64,000 nt of DNA from assembly GCA_002269645.1 (NCBI GenBank), contig NIVC01003660.1:1-64000 (forward strand), written 5' to 3'. Made by a program: the position numbers and the translations under genes. Positions within the stretch are counted from its first letter, which is position 1. Each line of letters begins with the position of its first letter. The stretch comes from Macrostomum lignano. Lineage: Eukaryota. This document shows positions 4,331 through 43,269 of this stretch, one piece after another. The notes beneath the pieces are model-generated. The model made no database searches and was not told the origin of the DNA. It saw only the letters and a program-made list of their open reading frames with translations.

Positions 4331-5413
4331 AAATTTGTTTGTTTGATTTATCGGAGCATACAAGCATGACATTTTTATTGAATTTCGATAAGACGTCTGC
4401 CTCAATCTGTCATGCTGGCTGTCAAAGTTAACAGAAAACCGGCAGGTACACTGCGCAATACTCGCCAACTCTGACTGAGTTTAGTGTAAATAATTGGGAT
4501 GGATTGAATTCATCTGATCAGGTCGTGTTGCTGCATCAATGATGTAGCATGAGCAGGATCCGGTAAAGTCTGGTGAATGGCAAATGTAAGTCGCAAGTTA
4601 GAATTGGAACAAGCATCTGTTAGACTCAGCAAGATACTCGTATTTCCGAAATCATCAAAGATTAAAGTCGCCGCAAATACTCGTACGAGTACATTTATTA
4701 CGAGCTCGCACAAAAAACTTGGGATTATCTAACAAGTTTGAGCACACGATCTTTTAAGTCTTTAAGAAACACCTCTAGAAATCTTGCTTAGCCATGTTCA
4801 TGGGCTACACTCGGGGAAACATGGCTTATGTCGAAGAACTAGCAGAATCACCCATGAATACCGTAGGAAAGTGTCTGCCCAAGATTTTCAAAAAGATGGC
4901 TCCTACGAGTTCTATATCCTGCAGTCCGTCGAACCCTTTCTTATTGTGACCGAAATCCAATAATCTTTATCTACCGAGACCGTGACTGAGTCAATGTCTT
5001 TGATCTGGTATGTGGAGGACTGGAAGTCCAATTGAAACAGACAGATGCCGGTCCTATAAGTTACACCCAGCATAAAGAACATAAGACGGATTATCGGTGT
5101 CGAATTACCTGAATAATTTAGCTCGTATCTTCTTTGCAGCTAACGCAAACTGGTTAAAAACTATATCGATTCCATTCAGGTCAATTAGTTCTGCATTGCC
5201 GGCAGCAGAATTTCGCATTGGTTGGGAGCACTCCTATACCCGAACTGGCAAGTTGTGCAGGAGACTGCTCAAGGTGTTCGGAGATTGGTTAAGGACCTAT
5301 ACCAGCTGCTTAAAATAAGCTAGCAGAAACTAAGAAAGCAAACCCAAGATACGGAACGACACCAGCTGTTTAATTTATTGTTGTTGATTTCAACCAAGCA
5401 AGGCCCAACAGCT

Positions 5414-6631
5414 ATGGCGCAACCAGGCGTGTAAGTCGTACAATGTGGATTTTACAAATCACATCTTGCTGGCGATTTACTCGGGTAGTTTTATTTAAAA
5501 AGACTTGCAACAAATTGCAATTGCAATTGATCGTTTTGAAAGCTGAAAATTATGTCAAAGAACCGAAAAGCTGCTTGTACGAGAGCCAGTTCAGTTGGAA
5601 AGTACACTTAACTGTACGAATAAGATTAGCCAATTCGCTATGAGTCGATAGAGGCATACCTTGTCATGCAATGACTGCAAGGAACAGCCATCAATAAGTT
5701 GCTTAGATCAGCGCAGCCGAAGTAAAAGCAACTAAGCCTATAAGTTATCAATTGCAAACTTCGAGCAGAAATCTGCATTTCAGACTATTTAAACGAAAAA
5801 ACAAAATCTACCTCGTGCTACAGGCTAATCAGTGTCAGCTTTGCCATCCTGGTTTTGATGCTAGTGACAAATGGCACTCACGGACTATTCAATGAGGACA
5901 AGAGAGGCTACTACTGGCCTGGCATGTGGAACTTCAGGAACGCTGACAAGAGAGGCTACTACTGGCCTGGCATGTTGAACTTCAGGAACGCTGACAAGAG
6001 AGGCTACTACTGGCCTGGCATGTGGAAATTCAGGAACGCTGACAAGAGAGGCTACTACTGGCCTGGCATGTGGAACTTCAGGAACGCTGACAAGAGAGGC
6101 TACTACTGGCCTGGCATGTGGAACTTCAGGAACGCTGACAAGAGAGGCTACTACTGGCCTGGCATGTGGAACTTCAGGAACGCTGACAAGAGAGGCTACT
6201 ACTGGCCTGGCATGTGGAACTTCAGGAACGCTGACAAGAGAGGCTACTACTGGCCTGGCATGTTGAACTTCAGGAACGCTGACAAGAGAGGCTACTACTG
6301 GCCTGGCATGTGGAAATTCAGGAACGCTGACAAGAGAGGCTACTACTGGCCTGGCATGTTGAACTTCAGGAACGCTGACAAGAGAGGCTACTACTGGCCT
6401 GGCATGTGGAAATTCAGGAACGCTGACAAGAGAGGCTACTACTGGCCTGGCATGTGGAACTTCAGGAACGCTGACAAGAGAGGCTACTACTGGCCTGGCA
6501 TGTGGAACTTCAGGAACGCTGACAAGAGAGGCTACTACTGGCCTGGCATGTGGAACTTCAGGAACGCTGACAAGAGAGGCTACTACTGGCCTGGCATGTG
6601 GAACTTCAATTACGATTCTCTGTACATCTGA
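5414..6631 (+). CDS. Secreted multi-copy peptide (neuropeptide-like) precursor, 274 aa, 2 exons
   Basis: Exon 1 5414-5430 (ATGGCGCAACCAGGCGT|gtaagt) plus exon 2 5824-6631 (ctacag|G) give the signal peptide MAQPGVLISVSFAILVLMLVTNGTHG. LFNED follows, then 15 KR-delimited copies of GYYWPGM(W/L)(N/K)F-RNAD. AATAAA at 6643-6648. Confidence 0.85.
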
Positions 6632-8087
6632 GGCGGAGGTGCAATAAATGCTACCCAATGTGACAGCTGGTTTTGCATAAATCTGTATGCCGAAGGAAGA
6701 CGACCTGATTAAATAAGGTTGAAAGTGATGCACACTTAACAAGATTTTAATAGGAAAATATACAGTATATTCATGCCATCTATATGACAGTCAGTCAGGC
6801 AATCTAAAAGAACTTTATCATCTCTTTTGATCATAATGTCATTAGATGTGAGAAGCAAACCTACTATTGAAGTACTGATATGAGCAGGTAAAAGTACATA
6901 TCCATCAATAGTTTTCAGACTAAAAAAACATTTCGATCTACTGAAAAAATCGCGCAAAAAACGAAAACAGCCGACTGACTGACTTGATTGATCAGCAATG
7001 CAGTCCGCGCATTGCAGGCTCTACTGACACCTTGACAGCTTCTGCGCCGGCCCGTCCGCTAGCTGTGCTGAATTATTAATTATAGCGAATAAATACAGTG
7101 TCTAAATGCTTGCAATCTATCAATTTAAAACGCGCGGGAAAGCATAAATGAAACACAATCAGTAATGTCTTGCAATTGAATGAGCAGCCGCAGTTATAGT
7201 TCGGCCTAGAGCTCGCTGGATTGACAATCAAGATCGAATCAAACGATTCGAGACTCGAATAAGAAACGGCCAGGAACCGGACGAAAGGAGGCCAGTATAA
7301 ACAGGTAAACTTGGCGGTTGAGCAGAGCAAATCGAACTTCAGTGTTCAGAAGACGGCGTAGTAAAAAGCCAATGAAATTGGCAAGATCAATAAAGGTCGA
7401 ATCGATAAAGGCAATTAACAGCTGCCAACCTGAGGTAGTGAGAGACTGAAAGCCCTGCTAATCCAAATCCGTACTTCGAGTATATAATAAAAGAAGAAAA
7501 AATTGAAAACAAAACGTGTGCCTCTTAAGTAAAATTTGCACACCGTAATCAGTTGATCAGAGACAATTCCGAAAATAAAAATATGCTAATAATTGTAGTA
7601 ATAGTAGTAGTTAATGCACAGGAGCTAGAAATTTGACTTTCCACATTGAAGAATGTATTTGGTTAGCATGATGGGATAGAGAGTTAATTTTTATGAACAA
7701 ACCGGTACACAGCAGTGCAGATCGCAACAATGCGCAGGCTTGCTACTGTAAGTAGATTATATATAATTTCAAGTGCTGCATTTCCGCGAACTTTCCTATA
7801 CAAATACGACTACAAAGAATAATGTAATAAGCAAAGATAATTTTGCACAACTTTGCGCTCGCATATTGCTACTTAACTTTTCGAATTCTTAAGTAGTATC
7901 AATAGCATACACGTAGGATTCGTGCAATCAAACGAGGCCTGTAACTTATTTATATAGATAAGTATTTTAGCTGCTTATTAATAAAATAAAAGGTGACGAC
8001 AGAAAACAAATAGGCATCATACTTGTACAAACCAATTCGGAGGCATAACTCAATGCTCAACTCAGAACTGTACGTGGGCCAGGCCAG

Positions 8088-8996
8088 CTACTGGCCATTG
8101 GTTTCGGATTTGGCGGCATTGCCAGAGACCGCAGCAGCAGCTACAACAGTCGTCGAGTTCACCGACGGCGCCAAAGCCGCAGCGGACGAAGCGGCTGCGC
8201 TGCCCGAACCGCCAGTTGAAGCAGCAGCAGCAGCAGCAACAGGAGGAGCAGCGGCAGAAGAAGCGGTACTCGGCGAGCCGAACAGCAACAGATCGTGCTC
8301 ATCGCGACAGTGCACCAGCAGCTCCCAGGCGGAGGCGAAGCCGGCACCGCAGTAGCTGCAGTCCATGCTAACTGGCTCGCCAGTCTGCAGACAGCGGCAC
8401 ACCAGGCGCAGCCGACAGCCGGCCTGCTTGTGCGCGCTCAGCTTCTCCAGGCTGGGCAGCAGCTCCTTGCAGTTGCCGCACACCAGCAGGTCTTTCACTG
8501 TCGGATCGTTCAGTGTCGGCCGTTTCTCCGGCTGCACCTCCGGCACCGGGTTGGACGGCTTCACCAGCGACACCAGATTGCTGGCCTTGCGGGCCATCAT
8601 CGAACCGGACGAAGACGAGTTCAACGATGGCACAGAGGGCGTTGTTGACGAGGTCAGATCCTGTCTGGCCCGCTTGATGGCTGGCTGGCCGGACATGCTG
8701 CCCCCGCTGGTGCCGCGACGCATCTTCGGCTCGCTGGCGATGTTGGCGTCGATGCGCATGCCGTGGTACACCTGGCCGTCCTCGCCCTGCACGGCGGCCC
8801 GGGCCGACCATTCCTCGGCGAATTGAACGAAGCCGAAGCCTTTGTGCACCGAGATGCCCAGCACAGTGCCGTAGCGGCAGAATCGCTGCTCCAGTTCGTT
8901 GCGGCTCATCTGGGCGGTGTTTAAATTGCCAACGAATACGCGAGACCGCTGCGACTGCGGATCCTGGGCGCTGGTCAGAGTGCCGCTGTTGTCCAT
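8088..8996 (-). CDS. hnRNP C/RALY-type RRM protein with C-terminal BCL11-like zinc fingers, intronless, 302 aa
   Basis: The N-terminal RRM has RVFVGNLN (RNP2) and HKGFGFVQF (RNP1), as in hnRNP C/RALY. The C-terminal half has DLLVCGNC...HKQAGC (CCHC) and CSYCGAGFASAWELLVHCRDEH (C2H2), followed by an Ala/Ser tail. Confidence 0.85.
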   Translation of the reverse strand: MDNSGTLTSAQDPQSQRSRVFVGNLNTAQMSRNELEQRFCRYGTVLGISVHKGFGFVQFAEEWSARAAVQGEDGQVYHGMRIDANIASEPKMRRGTSGGSMSGQPAIKRARQDLTSSTTPSVPSLNSSSSGSMMARKASNLVSLVKPSNPVPEVQPEKRPTLNDPTVKDLLVCGNCKELLPSLEKLSAHKQAGCRLRLVCRCLQTGEPVSMDCSYCGAGFASAWELLVHCRDEHDLLLFGSPSTASSAAAPPVAAAAAASTGGSGSAAASSAAALAPSVNSTTVVAAAAVSGNAAKSETNGQ

Positions 8997-9965: not shown

Positions 9966-10343
9966 TCAGGCCTTCACCGCGAACCGGCGCATTGGGAAAG
10001 CGCGCGCCTTTCTCTGCTGCTTGGCGCTAGTGGCGCCGGCCTCGCGCGGCGTCAGAGCGCGACGTAGAGCGCGAGTCTTCTTCGGCCTGAGATCCTTAGG
10101 CAGCTGCTTAGCATTCTTGTGAAATCGGCGCAGGTGCTCCTTCTGCTGCTGGTGCGTGACCGTGTGCACCCTGGCGATGGACTTGCGCACCAGCCGGATC
10201 TGCGCCAGCTTGGAGGCGGCGCCGCCGGTCACCTTGGCAACGCGCAGAGTGGACAGTTCCTGCTTGAGATCGGTGAGCTGCTTCTCAAGCTCAGACTTGG
10301 TTTTGGCGCGCAGCTTCTTGGCTGATTCCCTTTTGTTGACCAT
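9966..10343 (-). CDS. RPL35: 60S ribosomal protein L35 (uL29), divergent intronless paralog
   Basis: [24 protein letters not shown] and [11 protein letters not shown] motifs, C-terminal FAVKA, 125 aa. Confidence 0.95.
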
Positions 10344-10379
10344 GGCGACGTGGCATAGGGTGATGCAGACGGATAAAAT

Positions 10380-12012: not shown

Positions 12013-12672
12013 TCAGTACACCAGTACCCGCCGTTCTATAGGCTTCCTACAGATCGGACAGACTGTCATCTGGTCGCCGCAGTGCTGACAGGTGCCGTGG
12101 CCGCACAGGAACACCATGTTCTTCAGCCTGTCCAGACACACCGGACAGCTGGTCTGTTCGCGAATGTCCAACAATTGCTGTTGAATCTTCTGCATCTCGC
12201 GCAGCGTGGCAGTCTGATCCGGCTGCCCATTGTTCATCATGCCCTGCTGACGGTTTCGCGGCGGACCGGCGGCGGCGGCGGCGGCGGCAGCTGGCTGGGA
12301 CGTCGAGGCAGACGCTGTGGCGGAATTCAAAGCTGCTGAAACTGCTGCCGCGGTAGAGGAAGAAACTGCGGAAGAAGAAGAGTTCGAAGCAGCTGCAGCG
12401 GAAGCAGTAGAAGCAGCGGAAGTAGAGCCAGCAGCAGATTTTTCAATGCCAAACAGGTGCTCGGCGCAGCAGACGCCGTAGGGCACGGATTCTTGAATAG
12501 GCTGCCGGCACTGCACGCACTTCTTCATCAGGCCTGCGATGCGGGGGTGAAAAAGAGTTAAGTTAATTAACAATACAAACATAATCTCCTCACTCAATAG
12601 ATGCAGCATTAACTGTAGGTACAGCGTTGGCGTTGTTTTTTGTACATCTAAAACGAACCTTTTAACGGCCAT

Positions 12673-12722
<50 letters not shown>

Positions 12723-15700
12723 AATAAATCTACTTTTTCTACTGATTTAACAGATTCGAGTATTATACTCTAACTGAAGTTCACCAATAGTTTAATAAGT
12801 TGCTTAAAAAGTAAAAAACGGCCCTTTTCAGGGCCACAGAAAATCGTGAACTGACCGTCGCGTGTAATTAATTTTCTTATTGCTTAACTATTGCAGAAAT
12901 AGCGACTTTTCATCTGATCTACCAAGATAATTTTAGTCTGTTTTGCCTGGGATTTGCGCACAGACAAAATCTAAAAAATCTAGCTTAAAATTTCAAAACG
13001 GCCCTTTTTAGGGCCATAAACAGAAATTTGCGCACTCACCGGCGCAGCCTTCGCAGGCGCACATGTGACCGCACGGCCGGAACAGCACAGCCGCTGGCCG
13101 GTCGCTGCACACTAGGCACTCTTCAATCTTGGCCCGGCTAGTGATTGGCTCCTTGCAGATGAGGCACTTCTTAGCGCGGGCGGCGCACAGGCAGCAGCAG
13201 GCCACGTGGCCGCAGGGTCCGAATAGGCAGTCGCGCGGCTCGGAGCAGACCAGGCACTCGTCGGCGCCTGAGGATGCGGCAGCGGAGGCTGAGGCTACTC
13301 GGGCGCTGTGCTCGCGCTGGCACTTTGACAGAGCCTTGCACAGGTTGGGATCCGGGCACAGGTCCAGCGGCGTCTGGCCCTTCTTGTTCTTCAGGGTCAG
13401 GTCGGCACCGTTGGCCGCCAGGAAGCAGGCGATGGAGGCCAGGGATTTTTTGTCGCCGCTGTTTAAGCCGAGTCCCATCAGCAATTTGCCAACGTCTTGC
13501 ATGTCTTGCAGTTGGCGCAGCTGCGACAGCGTGTGATGCCGCAGAGCTTCGTGCAACGGCGTGTCGCCGTCTTTGTCGCGGACACTGACGCTGGCGCCTT
13601 CGCGGACCAGCAGACGAACCACCTGGGCGTGCTGGCGCTCCACGGCCAGGTGCAGCGGGGTCTGGGATGGGGGATGCAGTGCGAGTATGTCAGCTTGTCT
13701 CTCTGTCTATTATAAAAACACAGTGTCCTTTTGTCTTAATGTCTTTGTTTCCGTGTCCTACTGTCTTGGTGTCTTTGTGTCCTACTGTCTTGGTGTCTTT
13801 GTGTCCTACTGTCTTGATGTCTTTGTGTCCTACTGTCTTGATGTCTTTGTGTCCTACTGTCTTGGTGTCTTTGTGTCCTACTGTCTTGGTGTCTTTGTGT
13901 CCTACTGTCTTGATGTCTTTGTGTCCTACTGTCTTGATGTCTTTGTGTCCTACTGTCTTGGTGTCTTTGTGTCCTACTGTCTTGATGTCTTTGTGTCCTA
14001 CTGTCTTGATGTCTTTGTGTCCTACTGTCTTGGTGTCTTTGTGTCCTACTGTCTTGGTGTCTTTGTGTCCTACTGTCTTGGTGTCTTTGTGTCCTACTGT
14101 CTTGGTGTCTTTGTGTCCTACTGTCTTGATGTCTTTGAGTCCTACTGTCTTGGTGTCTTTGTGTCCTACTGTCTTGGTGTCTTTGTGTCCTACTGTCTTG
14201 GTGTCTTTGTGTCCTACTGTCTTGATGTCTTTGAGTCCTACTGTCTTGGTGTCTTTGTGTCCTACTGTCTTGGTGTCTTTGTGTCCTACTGTCTTGGTGT
14301 CTTTGTGGCCTTCTGCCTTGGTGTCTGCGTGTCCTACTGTCTTGGTGTCTGTGTCCTACTACCTTAGCGCCTGTGTCCTGTCTTGGTGGCTGTGTCCTAC
14401 TGGTGGTTTTTGTGTTCTGTCTGTCGCAGCAGTCAGCAGGCCTCCCAGTCACGCAGAGCTTACTCAATGCGTACCTGCATATTGACATTCTGTGTGTCCA
14501 GACAGGCCCCGCCGAGTTGTACGAGCAGTTCGCACACCTCCAGATGATTATTCAAAGCGGCCAGATGCAAGGCTGTATAGCCATCGTCTTTTCGCTCATC
14601 AACTAGCCATTGCCGCTGCAGTTTAGTCAGCAGGATCTTCATCGCCCTGCAAACAGAGCAAAGTTAGATAAAAAACAGAGTGCAGGACTAGAGGGTTGGA
14701 ATGGAACGAGAGTTCGTGCTAGGGTAAAGAGGAAGAGACCGACGAATTTTCCCCGACTCGATCCAATGGGATGCAAGGGAGGGAGAACGAGCAGGAGGGC
14801 TCATCCAGAGCAACACATATAACTGTGAGCTCGCATAGCATAGCCATAATATCAGATTTGGCGAAAATACACGCTAGACAAGTCGGTCAGAAGCGGCAGC
14901 ACGGCAATAGGAAGGTAAGGCTAGGACCGGGCACAAGCACTGCAGCAAAGCGCATTCCCTCATTACTCTCTCTTTTTTTGCTTCCTCATTTCTGTCTGTC
15001 GTCTTTGTCCGCTAGCGCAGCCGCATCCCCAGACCCGCGTGAATCAGCAGCAGCAGCAGTTCCACAGAATAGAAAGAATTCCAAAAGCAGATGCTACAAG
15101 ACGGATCCGAAGCCTAACCTTTTCCCCGCGAACACCCCCAGCCCCAGCCAGGGTGAATGGCATCATAAATGCAGCTGGGGAATATGGGGAGAAAGCGAGC
15201 CCCTTTCCCCTTGGGGCGCAGGGTGGATCCTCGCACGGGATGGGTGATGGCCTTTGCTGAATGCCCCGCTGACCCACAAACTGCCGCTCTACCTTTGCCT
15301 ACCTCTGCTGCCGATTCATTCCTAAACTTCCCCATCCCCCCCCCCACGGCGCAATGGACCCCATCACTCCTATCCCTCTCCCAAGTTCCTCTTCCCAACG
15401 CGTTTTTGCGTTTCGACAAAGCGACGGCCATAGCCTGCCATGCAGCTAGACGCAATAAATAGGCAGAACCTAAGCTGGGGCGCGGATCCCCAATACCAAA
15501 GCCCCTCAGCCTCAACCCCATCACCCCCCTTCGTTTCCTCGAATATCAGCCCCCCTCCCCACAGTTCGAAAGTATAAAAGCGGCACCAGCAACCCGGCCG
15601 GTGCCACTTCAGCGCTCGCGGTCCGTCTTACTTATAAGCTAAGCCCATTTTTTGCCTTCAGCAGTTTGGAATCGTTACCACGGGACCATGCTTCTTTGCA

Positions 15701-16526
15701 TAGACATGCGGCCAGCTGTAAGAGAATTTTCCGAACCAAACCTTCGCTTGCGAAGCTCGGAAGTTCTTTTTTTAAATAGCCCGACAACTCAAGCTGGATA
15801 GAGTAGTCCAGATAGGGGACAATTCGCGGCCAATTATAGTCACGAATTTTGTTCCCTTATTTGAGCTACAATATCTACTGTTGCTTTGAGTTTCGGGCCC
15901 AGCATTCAGCAAGCCATGGAATGTAAAGAAGTATGTTCTTTGTGTAACTTCGATCATCAACACGAGAGACCCGGCATGCTTTTGTTCTTGTATGCATCTA
16001 AGTGGAGGATACATACAGTGGGGATTAGGCCAGACGCTAGCTGTAGGGGAGCAAAAATTAGCATCGGCCGAATTTGGGAAGCCAGTTAGCTACCCGGCCT
16101 AGCAGCAAGCAGAGAGCCCAATGTTGAAGAAGCAAAACTTGGGGGATATGCAGATTGGGGATCGACGGCGAAGGGAAGGCTACGATCCGAAAGAAGGGAA
16201 GACAGAGGCAGAGAGAGAGGGGAGGCGAGCGAAGGCCGCGCGCAGATCGATAAAAGGGGATCGGGGCATTCGGACGGGATTTGGGACGAGCAAGCGGACG
16301 AGATGAGGAATAGGAAAATGGGAGCTATAGCTAAGAGTATGCGTCTATCAGGATCTCTCGCAACTGTGTCCAGAAATCGCACCGACCGACAGAACTCCCC
16401 CTCCCGCCGCCTAAGCCTGAAAATTCGCAGCAGCAGCCGCAGCCACCACAGCTGCTTCATCACGCACTCGCCCGCTCGCGCATTCGTTCATTAAGCATGC
16501 CAGCGCCCTCCGTGCCCACCTCCCTT

Positions 16527-16565
<39 letters not shown>

Positions 16566-19500
16566 GTCCATTCCTTTTTCCCTAGAGGCGGCATCTTTCC
16601 CGGGGCAGGAGCCCCCCCCCCACTCCGCAGCCTTCTCCTTAGTCATTCCATACGCCACAGCCTCGGGCCCGGAATATTTGCACATTTCGGTTACCGCTAT
16701 CAATGCTCCTATCTCCAATACACATCTGCGTGTGCCAAGCCGACAGTCTAGCACACGCCGGACAACGAATAAGCGCATGTGTTGGGTTAGGTAGTGGATA
16801 ATAGCAAGATTTGCAGGAAGCCTGCGCTTGACCCTGGCGCAACGCGGCGCTGAGATAATGGGATTATATAAAGGGATAAAGGGACTATTGAGGAAAAATC
16901 ATCCCTTAGCAACCCTGATCAGCTAGATCTCGGGCCGCCCGGGTAAATTCTACAGGCATTTGGAAACAAATTGCATGCGATATGAATTGACCCACTAGAC
17001 CGGATAACAGCTACAAGAGATTGCTCTTTGCGAGCGAAACAAACATTTTATCTTGCTACGCCAGGCTAGAAGCAATGCCTGCTTGATTTATCAATAAAGC
17101 GATTGCATCATCGGCAGCGAGGCGCAGGCGTCCCCTGATAGAAAAATCGAACATTATTACGTAATCATTTACTAGGCCTACTACTATCCTTCCTACTAGG
17201 ATCCTTCCTATCCTTCCTACTTAACCCGAAAAACTTTAGGGTGACTGCATGGCCATCACTTACTAGTTGGAGCCCCCCAGTAACACTTGAAAGAGAAAGC
17301 CAGCTATCTTAGTCATCATTTGTAGATAGGAGAATAAAATAACGGGCCATAGCAACTGCAGCTTCAGAGCTTCATCAGTCAGTTAGCATAGCAGCAATCT
17401 TGCGCATAGCTGATCTATACAAAAGCTATATATATATATATATATATATATTTATACGTACGAAGGCATGCAGCCAGTTGCTGGGCTAGCTGCACCAGTG
17501 CCGATAAGGACGCCCACACACAAGCGCGCATATATTATGAACTCCGATCGCCAGCCTAACCCGCCAGAAACCGGCTCGATTCGAACCGAGACGGGCAGCA
17601 ACAGCAGCGCGGAAGCCATTAAGCAACGCTTTCCCCAACCCGCTCCCATTAGAGAGAACCATAACTTGCCCCCCTACTCCCCTCCCCCCTTAGAAACCGC
17701 ATGGAAACAGCGGACTAGTTTCCATGCGGTTTCAAAATAGGGATTTTGTGGCTATTCATTTCACAGCTCCTCTATACATCCGCACAGGAAGACGTAGTAG
17801 AGATGAAAGATGAGAGTGGAGAGAGGGAAGAATAACCCTCAGACCCCAATGCACTGATGCGGTAACGTAGATGTTTAAGCAAAATAAGTGCCGATATTTC
17901 GAATTACTTTATATTTTTCCTCAGGCTAATGAGAGTAGATGAGAGAGATGAGAGAGAGAGAGATGAGACACGAACCTTAAGCGGGCCGGAGTTTGCTGAC
18001 TAAATATGAAAAATGCTCCACCATTCCAAGTGGTGGATTACTAATTGGAATTTTACTAACTAGAATCTATTCATATCAAATTTACACTACTGTAAGTAGG
18101 AAAAAAGCAAATTATACGCAATACTTACGCTGGATTGCCGCGCAGAGCTGTATGATGCAGCACGTTGAATCCGTCATTGTTGCACACGCTCAAGTCTGCA
18201 CCGTGCTCAAGCAGCAGAGCCAGAACGTCTTCGCGTCGTTTAGAAACAGCGTCGTGCAACGGCGTGTCCCCGTCCGCGTCCTGCAGGCTGGGCAGGGCGC
18301 CGCAGGCTAGCAGGGCCAGGACAACGCCGGCGTGGCCTTTATTAACGGCTATGTGCAGCGGCGTCTGGCGTCGGCGATTGCGCGCATTGATGTCGGCGCC
18401 GCGTCGATGCAGCAGGCGGACCAGCTCGGCCTGGTCGCCGAATGCGGCGTGGTGAACAGCCTGGTCGCCGTCGCGATCTTCGGCCTTCGAAAATTAATGA
18501 AAAAAATTCGTGATTCATTCGAAATGGTGTATGGGGGCTCAGATGACAGTCTGCTCCAACTGACACAGTCTGTTCTGTTCCAGTCTGACTGACAGTCTGC
18601 TCCAACTGACACAGTCTGTTCTGTTCCAGTCTGACTGACAGTCTGCTCCAACTGACACAGTCTGTTCTGTTCCAGTCTGACTGACAGTCTGCTCCAACTG
18701 ACACAGTCTGTTCTGTTCCAGTCTGACTGACAGTCTGCTCCAACTGACACAGTCTGTTCTGTTCCAGTCTGACTGACAGTCTGCTCCAACTGACACAGTC
18801 TGTTCTGTTCCAGTCTGACTGACAGTCTGGTCCAACTGACAGTCTGGTCCAACTGACACAGTCTGACTGACAGTCTGGTCCAACTGACAGTCTGGTCCAA
18901 CTGACACAGTCTGTTCTGTTCCAGTCTGACTGACAGTCTGCTCCAACTGACACAGTCTGTCCTGTTCCAGTCTGACACCCTGACAGTCTGCTCCAACTGA
19001 CACAGTCTGTTTTGTTCCAGTCTGACACCCTGACAGTCTGCTCCAACTGACACAGTCTGTTTTGTTCCAGTCTGACAACCTGACAGTCTGCTCCAACTGA
19101 CAGTCTGTCCTGTTCCAGTCTGACACCCTGACAGTCTGCTCCAACTGACACAGTCTGTTCTGTTCCAGTCTGAGGGTGTCGGGCACAAAATAGCAGACGA
19201 GATAAGTTGGAACATACTGTCAGAAGGAACACACTGTGTCGTCAGATGGATCAGACAATGTCAGATGAAACACAATCCGCCACTAAGTGAGAAAATCTGG
19301 ATTTGGAAGTATTAAGAAAGTTTTACCTGAAGATTGGCGCCCCGATCGATAAGCAGACGTGCGGCAGCAATGTGGCCGTTCTGCGACGCCGCCTGTAGCG
19401 CCGTGTGACCAGCGTAGATGGCGTTCGCATCAGCTGTAGGAGCCGCCGAGACTGCACGTTGCTGCTGCCGCTGCGGCGAGGACGAAGCCGACGATCGTCT

Positions 19501-22500
19501 AGCGCCCAGCAGCTCCTGCAGCCGGGACAGATCACCGTTAGCCGCCGCTTTCACCAGCTCTTCGCTCGGATCAATGACTCGGCCGTCACCGCTGCCATCC
19601 GCGCTGCCGCCGCCGGCGCCTCCGCCGCTGCCGCAGCCGCCGACATGCTCTTGGAATAGCTTCTTCAACAGGTTCGACAGCCGCTCACCAGACTGCGGCG
19701 AGTCGGGCACGCCGCCGCCGCTGCCCGAAGCCGACGAGACGCCGGCGGCGCCACCCGACGACGAGCCGCTGGAAGCAGCGCCGCCGCCATTGAAGTTAAT
19801 GCCGCCGGACTGTGGCGGGCAGGGGGCCAGACAGCCGGGGCTCAGCGTCATCACACTGCCGCACACGTCAACCTGGATTATAGATTAACAAGGGGCAACT
19901 GACAACTGAACACTAGTACCCCGGAACTGAACACTAGCAACCCGGAACTGAACACTAGCAACCCGGAACTGAACACTAGTACCCAGGAACTGAACACTAG
20001 CAACCCGGAACTGAACCGTAGCAACCGGAGAAAGAACCCTAGCAACCAGCAGAAATAGAACCCTAGCAACCAGCAGAAATAGAACCCTAGAAACCAGAAA
20101 TAGAACCCTAGCAACCAGAAATAGAACCCTAGCAACCAGAAAAAAACCCTAGCGACCAACAGAAATAGAACCCTAGCAACCAGAAATAGAACCCTAGCGA
20201 CCAGCAGAAATAGAACCCTAGCAACCAGCAGAAATAGAACCCTAGCAACCAGAAATAGAACCCTAGCAACCAGCAGAAATAGAACCCTAGCAACCAGCAG
20301 AAATAGAACCCTAGCAACCAGCAGAAATAGAACCCTAGCAACCAGCAGAAATAGAACCCTAGCAACCAGAAATAGAATCCTAGCAACCAGAAATAGAACC
20401 CTAGCAACCAGAAGTAGAATCCTAGCAACCAGAAATAGAACCCTAGCAACCAGAAATAGAAACCTAGCAACCCGGAAGCCGGTCATGCCGATTCCGCTGA
20501 CCCTGAGAACGCACACGAAAAAGTACGTTGGCATGCGCTCACACAGGGTGTACAGCGGCGTTGATTTTCTCAACATCAGGCATGTGCACATGTACACCTG
20601 GTGTCTATTAGTGTTGACTCGTGAATCGCACGGAATCGAACCCAGGGTACTTTTTTAACCGCTGAGCTACGGAACTCTGACCCATAGTACTATCAGTAGT
20701 AATAATACGACATACTCAACTAAACAAGGCCCGAACCTGAACGTCTCCATCGGAGCGCACTCGGACAACGCGACCAACCCGACCCCGACCGTTGCCCAGC
20801 AACTGCTGCTGCTGGTCGGAGCCGCTGGACGTCGTCGCCAGCACTCGGACCAAATCGCCTGGCGACAGAGCCAGCGGCACCGACTGCGGCAGATTCGGCG
20901 TCACTGGCAGCAGCGTCGTAGCGTAAACGGAACTGGCGCCTCCACCCGCGCCGCTTCCTCCGCCGCCGCCGCCACCAACTGCGGCGCGAAGCCTTCGGGC
21001 GGAAGCGGACGGGTCCGGGATGAGGCAGAGAGCGGCCGGGTTCAGCGTCCACCGGTTGCCGCTGGGATAAGAGACAACAGCGTCGCCGTCTTCGTCCACG
21101 CCAACGATAGAGCCGACAATGTCGACGCATTCGGACATGGCCGGGGACCAGCCGCCGTGGGTTCGTTGAAGGCGTTGAAACGTATCGGTGGACACGGCGA
21201 CACGTACCCGGTCGCCCGGCTGGAACGCGCACAGCTCCATGTGGGGACAGGCGCCAGGACAACCGGCGGAGCCGCCGCCCAGCTCCAGACTGGCCGAGGT
21301 GGACGACGCTGCCGAGGTGTCCGAGTTGGGCGGCCGGTTTATTTCGCCTATGGAAACAGTTGAATTTAAAATGAGGGATTATATTAGCATCAGACTACTT
21401 TCAGTAGGTATTTTGCATTAAACTTAATTTTCAATACAGTAAGTAAATAAGTGGTAACCGAGGAGGATATACAGGATTCTAAAAATCAATAAATGAGACT
21501 ATTCTTTTGATGGCTAGAGGGAGATTACTGAGATGACTAGAGGGAGATCATTGAGGTGGCTAGAGAGAGATTACTGAGATGGCTAGAAGGAGATTACTGA
21601 GCTGGCTAGAGGGAGATTATTGAGGTGGCTAGAGAGAGATTACTGAGATGGCTAGAGGGAGATTATTGAGGTGGCTAGAGGGAGATTACTGAGATAGCTA
21701 GAGGGAGATTACTGAGATAGCTAGAGGGAGATTACTGAGGTGGCTAGAGGGAGATTACTGAGATAGCTAGAGGGAGATTACTGAGATAGCTAGAGGGAGA
21801 TTATTGAGATGGCTAGAGGGAGATTACTGAGCTGGCTAGAGGGAGATTATTGAGGTGGCTACAAGGTGGCTAGAGGGAGATTACTGAGCTGGCTAGAGGG
21901 AGATTATTGAGGTGGCTAGAGGGAGATTACTGAGATGGCTAGATGGAGATTATTGAGGTGGCTACAAGGGTTCTAGACGTGGCATATACGAGCATATTTG
22001 TTTAAAAAAGCTGAATTGCGATTCTCAATGTTTCCTATTTGCACACATTAGGAGCTACATCTGCCTTACCTAGCAGCGGCAAATGGTCTCTATAATAGGC
22101 GAATGCTTTAGCCTCGGACACCACTCGCAGGTCAACCATGCCCTCGTAGCCAACCCTATAGAGATTTTTAACTCCGCTATCCCAGAGCACGTAGGCGGCC
22201 GACCTCGGCGCATCCGGGCACCAGTCCTGCACCTCGGTGACCTTGCCCCGCTTCCCGCTGCCGCCGTCCTGATCCTCCCATTGCCAGTCGACGCCGCGTA
22301 CAACCCTAGCGCCGGGAACAGGCCTCGGCAGGTGTATTTCTTAGCTCGCCGGCGGGAGTCGCACCAGACTGGCTCGGCTAGCGGGTGCACAAATTGAAAG
22401 AATCTGTGCCTAGTGGAGTGCTTGTCGCCGTGATAGCAGGCTGAGCACAGGGATACGCCGTTGCAATCGGCGCAGGCCCATCGGACGCCATACAGCGGCC

Positions 22501-22801
22501 TGGCGCCGCACTCGTCGCAGCTGAAACAGTCCTCGTGTACAACGCCAGCTGGCCCGTTGTCAAGGACGCGCAGGTCATAGGCGCCTGAGCAGCGATAATT
22601 AGCGGCGGTGCCATTGTCCCAAACTACAACGACTTCTTCTGGGCTTTCGAAATTGCGCACAGTGCCAACGCTGCCCTCGCCGCCGTCCTGTTTGGCCCAT
22701 TTCCAGTGGGGCCCGCGGACAACCCGACTGCCGACGCCCAGCTGCATAGTGGCAGTCAATAGTAGGTCGCCGGAGCCCGACATGAAAGAGGCATGCGACA
22801 T
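12013..22801 (-). CDS. MIB1: E3 ubiquitin ligase mind bomb 1 (MIB-HERC2, ZZ, MIB repeats, ankyrins, 3 RINGs), 7 exons, ~1186 aa after correcting one frameshift
   Basis: Exons (minus strand): 22070-22801, 20737-21347, 19327-19872, 18129-18484, 14475-14646, 13040-13661, 12013-12533. All junctions are GT-AG and phases are consistent once 1 nt is restored near 22314-22316. The sequence follows MIB1 throughout ([51 protein letters not shown]; [24 protein letters not shown]). Confidence 0.95.
12674..12721. repeat. (TCTA)n microsatellite in MIB1 intron 6
   Basis: Seen directly. Confidence 0.95.
13745..14400. repeat. 24-bp minisatellite (GTCTTTGTGTCCTACTGTCTTGGT) filling MIB1 intron 5
   Basis: About 26 near-identical copies. 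They explain the repetitive ORFs at 13561-14488. Confidence 0.95.
18544..19172. repeat. 46-bp minisatellite filling MIB1 intron 3
   Basis: Unit GACAGTCTGCTCCAACTGACACAGTCTGTTCTGTTCCAGTCTGACT with variants. Confidence 0.95.
19905..20472. repeat. 21/24-bp minisatellite (AGAAATAGAACCCTAGCAACC[AGC]) in MIB1 intron 2
   Basis: Tandem copies, preceded by a related CCGGAACTGAACACTAGCAAC unit. Confidence 0.95.
20615..20680 (-). mobile_element. Truncated tRNA-derived SINE head / tRNA relic
   Basis: The minus strand reads GTAGCTCAGCGGTTAA (A box) and GGGTTCGATTCC (B box), with the anticodon arm deleted. Confidence 0.45.
21509..21966. repeat. 23-bp minisatellite (GAGATGGCTAGAGGGAGATTACT) in MIB1 intron 1
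   Basis: About 19 tandem copies. Confidence 0.95.
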
Positions 22802-27019: not shown

Positions 27020-27430
27020 GCTACCCTAACCCTAACCCTAACCCGAATCTTAACGCAATAACCCTGAACCTAACCCTAAACCTAAACCCTAATACCAACC
27101 CTAACACTAACCCTACAGCCTGACATCTGCATAAGTTTGTGAAGAGCTAGTAGTATTTTTTAGCTTAGTATCTTAGCGTTAGGGAGCCAAAAATACAATA
27201 CAAGTTTTGTAATAAACTACATGTAGCATCTCTTTGCAATATACCTCAGAAGTCACTTGTAAGCCTTGAAATGTCAGTAATTCCCCCCACAAGCTTTAAC
27301 AAATCAACTCCCCCCTTGACATCTCAGCGATGCCCCAAATAAGCCTTGAAGTCTAAAAAATCTGTCAACCTTCTAACCCTAACCCTAGCCTAACCCTAAC
27401 CCTAACCCTAACCCTAACCTAACCCTAAAG
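27020..27430. repeat. Interstitial telomere-like (CCCTAA)n tracts
   Basis: Degenerate tracts at ~27025-27120 and 27372-27428, with a weaker one near 27800-27840. Confidence 0.8.
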
Positions 27431-28269
27431 CATTGAAATTTCAGTAATTCTGAGTCATTATAGCACTACTACAGCGTTATAGCGATTCCCTGCAAGCCTC
27501 GACATCGTAGGGATTCCCAAATGAATCTCTTCGCTTCGACATGAAGCTTCTTTTATTTTTTACATTATGCTTTTTCTATCAGTGAGCCCTGAGGAGCCAA
27601 CAAAAAAATGTAATAAAAAGTTTTCATTAAACTACATGTAGCTTCTGACTTTAGTCTTGAAATCTCATTTATACCCCGTGAGCCTTGACATCTCAGCTAT
27701 TCCCCCGTAAGCCTTGACATGTCAGCGATGCCCCCATAAATCTTGAAATCTAAAAAAATCCCCTGTTAACCTTGAAACCCGATAAAAAAAACCCTCAACC
27801 CACACCTGACCTAAACCTAACTTTAACCCAACCTAAAGCCTTGAAATCTCAGCAATTCTTCTCCCCTAAGCCTTGGCATTTTAGTGTTTCCTTCTTTAAG
27901 AATCACCAGCACTATAACGATTTCCACCAAGCTTTGACATTGTAGCAATTCCCAAATGAATCTTTTAACTTCGACATGACTTTTCTTATATGTATACATA
28001 GTGCTACTTTTATTTTTTACATGACTCTGCTTCTATCAGCGCCCCCCTGTGGCGAGCCAACAATGAATGTAATAAAAATTGAGTAAAGTACATGAACTTT
28101 GAAGTAGCTTCTGACTTTTGCTTTGACATCTCAGAAACCCCCCCCACCTGTAATCTCAGTTATTCTCTGTGAGCCTTGACGTCTCAGTAATTCTCCCCAG
28201 CACAGCACTGTACTATAGCTTCATTTAATTTTTATATGACACCTTTCATGTCTGACATGGCGCTTCTTT

Positions 28270-31215
28270 TGATTTTTACATGACGCTTCTTTTATTCTTC
28301 CATTATTCTTCTTAATTTTTTAAATGACACTTTCATTAGTTTTTATATGAGGCTTCTATGATTGTTTCCATGACGCTTCTATGATTTTACCATGACGCTT
28401 CTATTATTGTTTGCATGACGCTTCTATGATTTTTACATGACGCAACTATGATTTTTTAAATGACGCTTTTATGATTTTTTACATGACGCTTTTATGATTT
28501 TTTACATGACGCTTCTATGCTTGTTTACATGACGCTTCTATGCTTGTTTACATGACGCTTCTATGATTTTTACATGATGCTTCTATGATTGTTTACATGA
28601 CTCTTCTATGATTGTTTACATGACTCTTCTATGATTGTTTACATGACGCTTCTATGATTGTTTACATGACGCTTCTATGCTTGTTTACATGACGCTTCTA
28701 TGGTTTTTTTATGACGCTTCTATGATTGTTTACATGACGCTTCTATGGTTTTTTTTATGACGCTTCTATGATTGTTTACATGACGCTTCTATGATTGTTT
28801 ACATGACGCTTCTTTGACTTTTACATGACGCTTCTATGCTTGTTTACATGACGCTTCTATGATTTTTACATGACGCTTCTATGATTTTTTACATGACGCT
28901 TCTATGATTTTTACATGACGCTTCTATGACTTTTTCATGACGCTTCTATGATTTTTACGCTTCTATGATTTTTTCATGACGCTTCTATGATTTTTGCATG
29001 ACGCTTCCATGATTTTTTACATGACGCTTCTATGATTTTTTCATGTCACTTCGATGATTTTTTATGACGCTTCTATGATTTTTATGACGCTATTTTGACT
29101 TTTACATGACGCTTCTACGATTGTTTACATGACGCTTCTATGATTTTTTAAATGACGCTACTATGATTGTTTGCATGACGCTTCTATGATTTTTACATGA
29201 CGCTACTATGATTGTTTGCATGACGCTTCTATGATTTTTAATGACGCTACTATGATTGTTTACATGACGGTTCTATGATTTTTACATGACGCTTCTATGA
29301 TTTTTTCATGACGCTTCTATGATTTTTGCATGACGCTTCTATGATTATTACATGACGCTTTTATTATTTTTTCATGACGCTTCCATGAATTTTTCATGAC
29401 GCTTCTATGATTTTTTTGACGCTTTTTTGACTTTAACATGACGCTTCTATGATTGTTTGCATGACGCTTATATGATTGTTTACATGACGCTTCTATGATT
29501 TTTTCATGACGCTTCTATGATTTTTACATGACGCTTCTATGATTGTTTGCATGACGCTTCTATGATTGTTTACATGACGCTTCTATGATTGTTTACATGA
29601 CGCTTCTATGATTTTTTATGACGCTTCTATGATTTTTCATGACGCTATTTTGACTTTTACATGACGCTTCTATGATTGTTTACATGACGCTTCTATGATT
29701 GTTTACATGACGCTTCTATGATTGTTTACATAACGCTTCTATGATTGTTTACATGACGCTTCTATGATTTTTTATGACGCTTCTATGATTTTTCATGACG
29801 CTATTTTGACTTTTACATGACGCTTCTATGATTGTTTACATGACGCTTCTATGATTGTTTACATGACGCTTCTATGATTTTTACATGACGCTTCTATGCT
29901 TGTTTACATGACGCTTCTATGGTTTTTTATGACGCTTCTATGATTGTTTACATGACGCTTCTATGATTTTTTACATGACGCTTCTATGATTGTTTACATG
30001 ACGCTTCTATGATTTTTTACATGACGCTTTTATGCTTTTTTACATGACGCTTCTATGATTTTTTCATGACGCTTCTATGATTGTTTACATGACGCTTCTA
30101 TGATTGTTTACATGACGCTTCTATGATTTTTTACATGACGCTTCTATGATTTTTACATGACGCTTCTATGATTTTTTCATGACGCTTCTATGATTTTTGC
30201 ATGACGCTTCCATGATTTTTTACATGACGCTTCTTTGATTTTTTCATGTCACTTCGATGATTTTTTATGACGCTTCTATGATTTTTATGACGCTATTTTG
30301 ACTTTTACATGACGCTTCTATGATTGTTTACATGACGCTTCTATGATTTTTTAAATGACGCTACTATGATTGTTTGCATGACGCTTCTATGATTTTTACA
30401 TGACGCTACTATGATTGTTTGCATGACGCTTCTATGATTTTTATTGACGCTACTATGATTGTTTACATGACGGTTCTATGATTTTTACATGACGCTTCTA
30501 TGATTTTTTCATGACGCTTCTATGATTTTTGCATGACGCTTCTATGATTATTACATGACGCTTTTATTATTTTTTCATGACGCTTCCATGATTTTTTATG
30601 ACGCTTCTATGATTTTTCATGACGCTATTTTGACTTTTTCATGACGCTTCTATGATTGTTTGCATGACGCTTATATGATTGTTTACATGACGCTTCTATG
30701 ATTTTTTCATGACGCTTCTATGATTTTTACATGACGCTTCTATGATTGTTTGCATGACGCTTCTATGATTGTTTACATGACGCTTCTATGATTTTTTCAT
30801 GACGCTTCTATGATTTTTTACATGACGCTTCTATGATTGTTTACATGACGCTTCTATGATTTTTTACATTACACTTCCATGATTTTTATATAACGCTTTT
30901 ACGATTTTTACATGGCGATTCTATGATTGTTTACATGACGCTTCTATGATTTTTTACATGACGCTTCTATGATTTTTTCATGACGCTTCTATGATTTTTT
31001 ACATGACGCTTCTATGATTGTTTACATGACGCTTCTATGATTTTTTATGACGCTTCTATGATTTTTTATGACGCTATTTTGACTTTTACATGACGCTTCT
31101 ATGATTGTTTACATTACGCTTCTATGATTTTTATATAACGCTTTTACGATTTTTTACATGGCGCTTCTATGATTGTTTACATGACACTTCTATGATTTTT
31201 TACATGACGCTTCTT
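28270..31215. repeat. 22-23-bp satellite (CATGACGCTTCTATGATT[G/T]TTTA), ~2.9 kb
   Basis: Well over 100 tandem copies, with an internal higher-order duplication at a 1203-bp offset. Confidence 0.97.
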
Positions 31216-33010: not shown

Positions 33011-33085
33011 AACATTGAAATCGTCTCTGCTAAACTTGACTTAATCGAATTTTTTCCGTCAAACAACTCAACTCGCCAGATTCAT

Positions 33086-33118
33086 TAGGGTTAGGGTTAG
33101 GGTTAGGGTTAGGGTTAG
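33086..33118 (+). repeat. (TTAGGG)5 telomere-like repeat
   Basis: Seen directly; opposite orientation to the CCCTAA tracts at ~27 kb. Confidence 0.9.
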
Positions 33119-34443
33119 AACTACGCACAGCTTCGTGTTAAAAGGCACAGATAAAAATATTGAACTAATTGAATCAATTCATTGCGCAACCGATTTCACA
33201 GTCAGTCAGTATCAGCCTCAGGTAAAGTTAACAAAAACATTGCGCAATCTAAATCAACCCTCCAATACACAGCAGCAGTGAGAAGTTGAACCCTTCCCCC
33301 AACAATCTTTGCAGATTAAAGTACAATCTTTGCAGAAAGTTAAAAGTATGGAAATAGTTTTTCAAATGCTGTGCTTTTTCTTTTCATATTTAAAGCAAAC
33401 AACTTATATCCCCGAACTCAGCGTTGCAAGATCTTTCCAGCAATATAAGTCTCTTCTCTCAAAGTTTAAAACTCGAGGAACAGTTAGCGTTTGAAACTGT
33501 CTGATTTATAGCATTGAAGTATCGAGTGTACGTTCACTGCCTGCTTGCAAGATGATGCATTGAATTTCAATGTCCAACAAATACACAGGACTGCCCATTG
33601 AAAGGCAGGAAAACTTATCAGTAGCCATATCATTGCGCAATTATCTATAAAGTCAGCCAGTGAGCTAGGGTTGACAAATTGAAATCAAGAAATTTTCTAT
33701 GACAAATTGCTCTGATGCAGTTGAGATTTCGGAACAGAAAATTATACCATTCTGTTCAGTTTTTCAAACTCTTTCCAACGGTGTGATTCACTTTTCTGTA
33801 GCTTGAAAATTAAAAGCAGAAATTAAGGTGCAAGTTTTCCCGTTTCTTACTTGCAGAGCGCAATGTACACTCTGTGATGAGTTAAAAAATCAAGCCATCC
33901 ATTCTCGCGCAGTGTGCACCTCCACCCCTTTTTAACACTGAGCAAGTAGGCCGCCAATTCTTAAGTGCCGGCGACCCTCCCCCAGCTGAAATGAAATACA
34001 CTGCAGAGATAGGAGAAAAGTTGTGGCGCAACCATACAAAATAGCGTCAAGTGGGAAGTCCATGGAATGCGATATATAGACATCTGGTCTGGCTGTCTGG
34101 TTTGTGCTGTTTTCTGCTTTTTTGAAGCACTTAAAATTGAAATTTGAAAATGAATTTTAAATTGTAGCATCGTCGGGACATTTGACATGTTTTGGTACCG
34201 GTTTGAAAGTTGAGTTGCAAGAATCCTAGGAGGAGATCGTCGACAAACCCGGCCCACCGGCCCACCCTACCACCGGACCACGACGTCAGCTTTAGTATAT
34301 AGAGGAGAAGGAGATGATTGAAATTTTAAAGTTTAAATTCTAAAAACTTCATCTTTTATGATCTAAAGGTTAAAAATTTATTATCAAATACTTTGAGAAG
34401 TACTTTGAGAAATAGCCTAACCCAATTAATTTTTGTTGCAGTA

Positions 34444-38461: not shown

Positions 38462-43269
<4,808 letters not shown>

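Follow-up and report, generated by a model that had tools for sequence, protein, structure and literature searches.

Near the start of contig NIVC01003660.1 of the flatworm Macrostomum lignano (GenBank assembly GCA_002269645.1, Mlig_3_7) lies an array of 15 units, each of which opens with the dibasic pair KR and encodes GYYWPGM(W/L)(N/K)F. The locus raises the question as to what such an array specifies: a precursor from which short peptides are excised, a secreted repeat protein that is left uncleaved, or a minisatellite that happens to read as an open reading frame (ORF). It was analysed in the context of positions 1 to 64,000 of the contig, the 64,000-nt stretch that we term the window, and the gene itself (5414-6631, plus strand) is termed the window gene. 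The evidence comes from its gene structure, a transcript-based annotation, two relatives with only a few units each and a near-identical sister locus. The reading that we favour, and hold to be probable, is that the window gene encodes a peptide prohormone of the multi-copy kind, which convertases process into non-amidated products and whose family is lineage-restricted.

Gene structure and repeat array

The coding part of the first coding exon, from the ATG at 5414, is ATGGCGCAACCAGGCGT (17 nt); it ends at a GTAAGT donor at 5431, and the next exon begins at 5824 after the acceptor ...CTACAG/G. The joined coding sequence is 825 nt long and yields a product of 274 aa (about 29 kDa when intact), with the stop TGA at 6629-6631. 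The N-terminus of this product is MAQPGVLISVSFAILVLMLVTNGTHG, followed by LFNED. Its best 12-residue hydrophobic stretch, VLISVSFAILVL, has a mean Kyte-Doolittle value of 3.0 and sits inside a 15-residue core. This core, together with the small residues at -3/-1 before Leu27, marks a predicted signal peptide, with a possible cut after Gly26 or Gly23. The 273-nt 5' leader (5088-5273 joined to 5327-5413) has no ATG at all; hence, 5414 is the first AUG of the inferred mRNA. A first-pass annotation of this DNA, made from the letters alone, had proposed the 17-nt exon, the in-phase splice 5430/5824, the 26-aa leader and the 274-aa product: the sequence reads so, and a public 274-residue gene call occupies the same span. 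The same annotation pointed to an AATAAA beyond the stop. That hexamer is indeed present at 6643-6648, but it is AACAAA in the sister copy described below, and since it is not kept there the poly(A) signal in use may be another one; the choice between AATAAA and a conserved ATTAAA at 6708 is uncertain.

The 15 units begin at 5900, 5948 and so on to 6572, at 48-nt spacing, and each opens with AAGAGA (KR), giving 15 dibasic sites that delimit the repeats. Nine units are of the MWNF type, three are MLNF (TGG>TTG, W>L) and three MWKF (AAC>AAA, N>K), and the variation among units is confined to those two nucleotide positions. Eight of the MWNF units are identical 48-mers encoding KRGYYWPGMWNFRNAD; the ninth leads into the unique tail NYDSLYI. 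Along the array the unit types follow one another as N L K N N N N L K L K N N N N, with the adjacent L-K pair occurring three times as a 96-nt block. Tandem Repeats Finder (TRF) describes the array by a period of 48, 14.8 copies, 98% matches and a score of 1382. Direct reading and TRF reproduce what the first-pass annotation had said of the unit counts, the KR openings, the tail, the identity of the units at synonymous sites and the LN-WK block of 96 bp. Its prohormone-type architecture is likewise borne out by the signal peptide and the KR-delimited repeats, and its expectation of non-amidated products agrees with the absence of a Gly ahead of the basic site in every unit.

The ORF through the array is not in itself coding evidence because the 48-nt unit has no stops in three of its six frames, a 285-aa ORF runs over the array on the minus strand, and the window is rich in minisatellites. 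That minus-strand ORF was rejected as a coding sequence: it comes without a start context, signal peptide or gene call, and stays open only since no stop falls in that frame of the unit. The case for coding draws instead on four things: the signal peptide, the splice, a gene call in the public annotation and the existence of relatives.

Transcript-based annotation

The public gene call on the contig is a protein of 274 residues with no Pfam domain, whose span is exactly 5414-6631. A span of 1218 nt set against a coding sequence of 825 nt means that exactly 393 nt have been removed, which is the proposed intron. The annotation was built from genome-guided RNA-seq assemblies (StringTie/TACO) and TransDecoder ORFs, its transcript boundaries were set by trans-splicing and poly(A) reads, and its pipeline dropped transcripts that overlap repeats, a filter that the window gene passed (PMC5730564). 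Because the transcript-derived call covers exactly the same span, the splice is supported, and so is the status of the window gene as a real, transcribed and spliced gene of M. lignano. The idea that it was an unannotated gene does not stand: GenBank already lists a hypothetical protein here, and a fragment of a variant copy is present in UniProt.

The spliced product matches two M. lignano proteins, P0001 and P0002. P0001 is the UniProt fragment A0A1I8HFB1, an older, independent model, and has the same coding junction (MAQPGM/LISV...); it also covers the 5' untranslated region (UTR), namely 5088-5273 and 5327-5413 across a 53-nt intron. It is a fragment of a variant copy, and its UniProt name, 'Salivary secreted protein', is automatic and uninformative. 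P0002 is taken up in the next section. The neighbours downstream of the window gene are an RRM protein (8088-8996) and RPL35 of the Ribosomal_L29 family (9966-10349, minus strand). The public call for RPL35 starts at a non-ATG codon, two codons before the ATG (VAMVNK...). This fits an ORF extended to the 5' end of its transcript, and thereby fits transcript-derived ORFs.

Relatives and selection on the peptide core

P0002 (BOX15_Mlig013514g1 / A0A267G6W2) is an uncharacterised M. lignano protein of 160 aa with three genomic copies. It has a hydrophobic leader that is a predicted signal peptide, three units (RR-ASYWPGMWQFDR, KR-GYYWPGMWNFDR and KR-AYYWPGMWRYQQRR), Tyr-rich spacers, a YYYYYD tail and a C-terminal module, YWLGKACGETGDPAACSILNG. 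As in the window gene, its first coding exon is 17 nt long (ATGACAACTCTTGGAAA, followed by the donor GTAAGC) and is followed by a phase-2 intron. The second relative, P0003, is orthologue-like, comes from another species and is encoded by L004, a 926-nt transcript contig from run SRR30276804; this contig is intron-free, and its exon structure is thus not comparable. The L004 ORF begins with a hydrophobic leader, again a predicted signal peptide, and continues with RR-ASYWPGMWHFNR, KR-GYFWPGMWHFSRNRK, KR-GYFWPGMWQYRR and KR-ATFWPGMWRHR. Its spacers are acidic, not Tyr-rich, and unalignable with those of P0002. The window protein matches P0002 with E = 1.1e-4, and P0002 matches P0003 with E = 7.5e-23.

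A phmmer search with P0002 against 1.84 billion representative proteins returned only P0002, P0003 and P0001, and a profile built from P0002 and L004 recovered these two proteins only; no further relatives were found in 1.8-5.8 billion proteins. A 48-column profile of concatenated units gave no matches and missed the known members too, and is hence uninformative.

The core of the family can be written x-x-[YF]WPGMW-x-[FYH], and KR/RR stands exactly two residues before [YF]W in all seven units of P0002 and L004. Over ten distinct units the positions R2, W6, P7, G8 and M9 are invariant. A basic residue (Arg) is found 2-4 positions past the core in all ten aligned units, the exception being the terminal unit of the window gene with its NYDSLYI. 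The precursors of P0002 and L004 are 48% identical. Their conserved blocks (50 codons) show 17 synonymous and four non-synonymous differences, and in the block RRASYWPGMW the counts are six and zero, with six of the seven silently changeable codons changed. This codon comparison shows purifying selection, across a small gene family, on both the core and the dibasic site in front of it. In P0002 and L004 the cores are conserved and the spacers have diverged: conserved, putatively excised peptides with free spacers are the classical prohormone pattern. Both relatives are alike to the window gene in the peptide core and in its register after KR/RR, and are as such true relatives. They are unlike it in having 3-4 diverged copies with long unrelated spacers in place of 15-21 amplified units and a short unique tail.

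P0002 and L004 further share a strongly conserved C-terminal two-Cys module, YWLGKACGETGDxxACS(I/V)LNG, which comes after a basic site and has no counterpart in the window gene. It is located at 10925-11039 of L001, a genomic copy of P0002, and at 565-647 of L004, and finds no match in Pfam or the Protein Data Bank (PDB). It may be a separate, disulfide-looped peptide of the same precursor. Two of the three P0002 copies are followed, 5-10 kb downstream, by a gene of the Peptidase_M13 family (neprilysin/ECE-like; L001, 20360-21042; L003, 15985-17863). M13 enzymes degrade secreted peptides, and this proximity is maybe a coincidence.

A sister locus with a different copy number

A second copy of the region is found on the minus strand of contig NIVC01002387.1 (14221-15751; locus L006). 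Its gene order is that of the window, with genes for Mind bomb, RPL35 and the RRM protein, and a public gene of 378 residues is in the corresponding place. The product of this gene has the same leader with V6M and 21 units, which without exception keep the frame and share the core GYYWPGMWNF: 12 of 48 nt (RNAD), eight of 51 nt (RNADD, GCGGACGAC) and a final unit with the tail HYDSLYI. The 51-nt units owe their length to an extra Asp in the spacer, a 3-nt insertion that is the sole change of unit length between the copies. The intron, 330 nt upstream and 1.4 kb downstream are 99-100% identical in the two loci, which also have in common about 1 kb ahead of 5088. Since the intron and the near flanks are this similar, the two loci are very recent duplicates or haplotypes of a partly duplicated genome. 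In neither genomic copy is there damage to the signal peptide, the start context, the intron phase or the stop. P0001 represents a third arrangement, with M6, a first site that is KR and a run of four RNAD units.

The two arrays differ in copy number (15 vs 21) and in the variants that they carry, and near-identical loci that differ in this way show that the copy number of the array changes rapidly. The first-pass annotation had suggested recent expansion or homogenisation, and a 21-unit array beside a 99% identical intron and near flanks upholds this. It had also held that copy number varying out of frame would speak against the gene; all differences come in steps of 48 or 51 nt, and the gene is not refuted. 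As coding evidence these in-frame differences are weak, because the gain or loss of a whole unit necessarily keeps the frame, and the 3-nt insertion probably arose once and then spread.

Comparison with known peptide families

Several families of multi-copy peptides offer points of comparison. Searches with the window gene product gave, in Pfam at E <= 10, only a sub-threshold chance match to Neil1-DNA_bind, and nothing meaningful in the PDB by sequence. The strings WPG, GMW, YWP, FWP, WPGM and PGMW are absent from the eight supplementary files of the Schmidtea/Schistosoma prohormone catalogue, in which a motif split by a line break could escape; the positive control YIRF/GKR was found in the same catalogue (PMC2953531). 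Neither YYWPGM, WPGMW nor Mlig013514 is mentioned in the full-text literature searched, an earlier mention among M. lignano expressed sequence tags (ESTs) being still possible, and the same literature yielded no dedicated survey of the neuropeptides or peptide-signalling repertoire of M. lignano. The first-pass annotation had not recognised the family, and it has no match in Pfam, the PDB, the planarian/schistosome catalogue or the full-text literature. On sequence grounds, it is so far a peptide family not described before, small and lineage-restricted.

In architecture, and in architecture only, the nearest known system is the pedal-peptide/orcokinin type, as represented by Smed-ppp-1 and ppp-2 (PMC2953531). 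These share with the window gene a signal peptide and many back-to-back, non-amidated copies of 10 to 14 residues separated by KR/KRR, as well as an aromatic pair near the N-terminus of the peptide (GAYYDPIGGGLL vs GYYWPGMWNF). However, their signature is [FY]D.IG..LL as against [YF]WPGMW.[FY] here, and the units of the window gene carry an additional short RNAD spacer. An hhalign comparison of the unit profiles of the window family and of the planarian pedal-peptide-like precursors gave a probability of 4.6% over four aligned columns, and thus no detectable profile similarity.

In motif, the nearest are the Wamide peptides. Cnidarian GLWamides end in xPGLWamide, and the MIP/allatostatin-B peptides of protostomes have the form W(X6)Wamide. 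Together with the planarian (V/T)PGWamide prohormone, the Wamides are like the window gene in their Pro-Gly-(Leu/Met)-Trp motif and in their multi-copy precursors with dibasic sites. The Schmidtea prohormone itself (...VPGWGKR...TPGWGKR...) holds several copies of xPGWamide (PMC2953531, supplement file 6). In the window family, in contrast, N/K/Q/H/R comes after the second Trp, then F/Y/H and then R, with no Gly-KR and no Trp-amide; the Trp-Trp gap is three residues (W-P-G-M-W), outside the W(X5-8)W of MIP; and three units of the window gene have Leu in place of that Trp. The PG(L/M)W likeness to Wamide and xPGWamide peptides is offered as a lead only to a possible distant relationship.

The FMRFamide-like, NPF and YIRFamide precursors of flatworms also combine a signal peptide with multiple short, KR-flanked peptides, and are processed by the prohormone convertase PC2 in these animals. 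The window gene differs from the FMRFamide-like, NPF and CCK-sulfakinin types: it has no RF/RY- or MDF-Gly amidation site and shares no sequence similarity with them.

Structure predictions

The array (5855-6628) was modelled with AlphaFold2 in single-sequence mode (model m5d1a8fdc6ef0). The best model is a beta-solenoid-like stack with a predicted local distance difference test (pLDDT) score of 76.7 and a predicted template modelling (pTM) score of 0.69; the other four have pLDDT values of 36-60. A Foldseek search with the array model gave nothing below E = 0.1. Perfect repeats are well known to be modelled, artefactually, as regular stacks, and given the inconsistent confidence of the models and the lack of a Foldseek match, the beta stack was set aside as an artefact of this kind. 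A perfect 16-residue repeat that yields a confident-looking solenoid also serves as an illustration of repeat-driven prediction. P0002 has a pLDDT of 47.5 and is predicted to be disordered, with no confident fold.

Proposed processing and alternative readings

What is established about the regulated secretory pathway underlies each step of the processing that we propose for the product of the window gene. The leader would be removed in the endoplasmic reticulum by signal peptidase after Gly26 (or Gly23); a PC2/PC1-type convertase would then cut after each KR in the regulated secretory pathway, and an enzyme of the carboxypeptidase E type would trim K and R. This would release 14 copies of a 14-mer, comprising eight of GYYWPGMWNFRNAD, three of GYYWPGMLNFRNAD and three of GYYWPGMWKFRNAD, together with one C-terminal 17-mer, GYYWPGMWNFNYDSLYI. 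The peptides would leave with a free C-terminus, since no Gly precedes the basic site. A second cut, at the Arg that stands 2-4 residues past the core throughout the family, may give the 10-mer GYYWPGMWNF. The computed [M+H]+ values are 1776.76, 1703.76 and 1790.81 for GYYWPGMWNFRNAD, GYYWPGMLNFRNAD and GYYWPGMWKFRNAD, respectively; 1320.55 for the 10-mer and 1476.65 for GYYWPGMWNFR; 2188.95 for GYYWPGMWNFNYDSLYI; and 1891.79 for GYYWPGMWNFRNADD of the sister copy. For the products predicted from the paralogue P0002 they are 1387.58, 1435.58 and 1648.74. Two precedents are available: M. lignano has an essential PC2 homologue (RNA815_2403.2) with expression in the nervous system (PMC4490696), and the non-amidated, KR-delimited multi-copy peptides of Smed-ppp-1 of Schmidtea mediterranea have been confirmed by mass spectrometry (PMC2953531). 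Once released, the peptides may serve as diffusible signals to a receptor, a neuronal or endocrine role being the likeliest. The high-copy gene, in turn, would have arisen from a precursor of the ancestral 3-4-copy type by tandem amplification of one unit, and its array would still be changing in copy number by unequal exchange.

A number of observations weigh against this prohormone reading. The peptides are without an amidation site or the site of any other hallmark modification; the first dibasic site in the sister copy is KK instead of KR; and core substitutions (W>L, N>K) in six of the 15 units suggest some relaxation. The aromatic-rich composition of the product and the Tyr-rich spacers of P0002 would also fit structural proteins, and the beta-stack model keeps a folded repeat protein formally possible. 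Cleavage, secretion, the cell type and the signalling role are all things that we infer. The trimming to the 10-mer has some support from the family-wide Arg, but the rules for monobasic sites oppose it: the mammalian rules set out by Devi in 1991 reportedly disfavour an aromatic residue at P2 and the lack of a basic residue at P4, P6 or P8. As F-R/N breaks these usual mammalian rules, the exact product is uncertain.

The alternatives differ in how much of this architecture they retain. It may be that the precursor is processed in the same manner but for an exocrine purpose, as a product of prostate (seminal fluid), pharyngeal or epidermal glands that serves as a pheromone, mating allohormone, or defensive or feeding secretion. 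A very high copy number with fast turnover (15 vs 21) is common in exocrine and reproductive secretions, and the lineage restriction of the family (just three proteins in the phmmer search), the missing amidation signal and even the automatic 'salivary' name of the fragment would suit such a role. We nevertheless regard it as unlikely: the core is under purifying selection between species whose precursors are only 48% identical, which is slower than is typical of seminal-fluid proteins, and the paralogue with few units has the irregular spacing, and L004 the acidic spacers, typical of neuroendocrine prohormones. A neuronal or endocrine signalling role is ranked first and an exocrine role second.

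Should cleavage not take place at all, the product could be a repeat protein, secreted and rich in aromatic residues, which folds or is cross-linked into an eggshell, adhesive, rhabdite or cuticle-like matrix, with KR as a part of the repeat, e.g. for cross-linking through Lys. In a protein of this type one would expect short, degenerate Gly/Tyr/Lys-rich repeats along the whole length, kept in composition and not as separate units set off by dibasic sites. Flatworm eggshell precursors are Tyr/Gly/Lys-rich repeat proteins, and the 274 residues of the window gene product include 33 G, 32 Y, 27 W and 17 F; the Tyr-rich spacers and YYYYYD tail of P0002 and the regular stack of the best AlphaFold2 model point the same way. 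We consider this quite improbable, since the five models range from pLDDT 36 to 77 without a Foldseek match, P0002 is predicted to be disordered, and the motif in P0002 and L004 occurs only 3-4 times, irregularly spaced and fixed at two residues after a dibasic site, amid spacers that are non-conserved and in L004 not Tyr-rich: a pattern of excised peptides and not of a scaffold. Least probable is that a minisatellite grew within transcribed DNA, so that the gene is young or in decay and its product without a function of its own. The window does abound in minisatellites, half of the unit frames are open by chance, the identity of the units at synonymous sites leaves the array alone without a signal of selection, and six of its 15 cores carry substitutions. 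Yet the unit copies a peptide that is under purifying selection in a paralogue and in another species; the signal peptide, start context, intron phase and stop have stayed intact in both copies, with the 3-nt insertion as the sole length change; and the gene passed an annotation that excluded repeat-overlapping transcripts.

Preferring the prohormone reading, we can also frame a wider proposal, which we advance tentatively and with less confidence. [YF]WPGMW would define an undescribed, macrostomorph-restricted family of non-amidated, aromatic-core signalling peptides with a receptor of its own, consisting of an ancestral 3-4-copy precursor with a two-Cys C-terminal peptide and a derived 15-21-copy gene that is still changing between duplicated subgenomes or haplotypes.

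Table 1. Features of the window gene and its flanks (coordinates are those of the window)
Feature	Position	Strand	Basis or remark
TATAAG, possible TATA box	5055-5060	+	About 30 nt upstream of 5088; pattern only, putative role
5' UTR exon 1, minimum extent	5088-5273	+	P0001 100% identical across the stretch; without ATG
5' UTR intron, 53 nt, GT..AG	5274-5326	+	P0001 junction ...RRLLK/KLRKQ... maps to 5273/5327
5' UTR portion of exon 2	5327-5413	+	No upstream ATG; start context CAGCTATGG
First coding segment, 17 nt, MAQPG + 2 nt, then phase-2 intron	5414-5430	+	Direct reading; same in P0002
Intron, 393 nt, GTAAGT...CTACAG	5431-5823	+	Direct reading; matches span of public gene call; 99% identical in sister copy
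Remainder of predicted signal peptide, to Gly26	5824-5884	+	Hydrophobic core VLISVSFAILVL; small residues T, G at -3/-1
N-terminal propeptide LFNED, ahead of first KR	5885-5899	+	Direct reading
14 units of 48 nt, KR-GYYWPGM(W/L)(N/K)F-RNAD	5900-6571	+	Direct reading, TRF
Unit 15, KR-GYYWPGMWNF + unique tail NYDSLYI + TGA (6629-6631)	6572-6631	+	Direct reading
AATAAA, starts at 12th base past stop	6643-6648	+	Pattern; AACAAA in sister copy
ATTAAA, alternative poly(A) signal, about 77 nt past stop	6708-6713	+	Present in both copies

Other features of the window

The window as a whole gives 98 TRF rows, and many of its minisatellites yield long ORFs. The large arrays are found at 28255-31214 (23/45 nt, about 3 kb), 61947-63354 (35 nt x40), 48262-49146 (15 nt x59), 38983-39898 (34 nt x27) and 13753-14360 (24 nt x25). 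Several of these give spurious long ORFs on both strands, and some lie within introns of a Mind bomb-like gene (12013-22801, minus strand). A 720-aa ORF (41107-43269, plus strand), to which Pfam assigns no domain, includes an in-frame (ACAG)58 at 42077-42307, which is translated as (TDRQ)n; it is either a real exon or an ORF artefact. Interstitial telomere-like repeats are present at 27023-27115, 27373-27428 and 33085-33118, as (CCCTAA)n and then, 6 kb on, (TTAGGG)n, in an AT-rich and repeat-dense stretch. The single-exon ORF at 34393-35106 (plus strand) has a CNPase (2',3'-cyclic nucleotide 3'-phosphodiesterase) domain (E = 9e-28), and near it is an ORF with a THAP domain (35710-36162, minus strand) that is possibly transposon-derived.

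Significance

M. lignano is a model flatworm in which regeneration, stem cells and sexual conflict are studied and in which transgenesis and RNA interference (RNAi) are possible. The architecture of the window gene is a textbook one and challenges no current concept; its value lies in that an orphan precursor that looks highly expressed and has 15-21 copies of one peptide is an accessible entry to peptide signalling in this animal, while the orphan G protein-coupled receptors (GPCRs) of flatworms are of interest as anthelmintic targets. Were the product exocrine or structural, the locus would still define an unknown secreted product of the model animal. The near-identical loci of 15 and 21 units bear on how fast the dosage of a peptide can shift after genome duplication, and if the signalling-family reading is true, they would be a live case of the evolution of neuropeptide dosage by unequal exchange, testable in a tractable animal.

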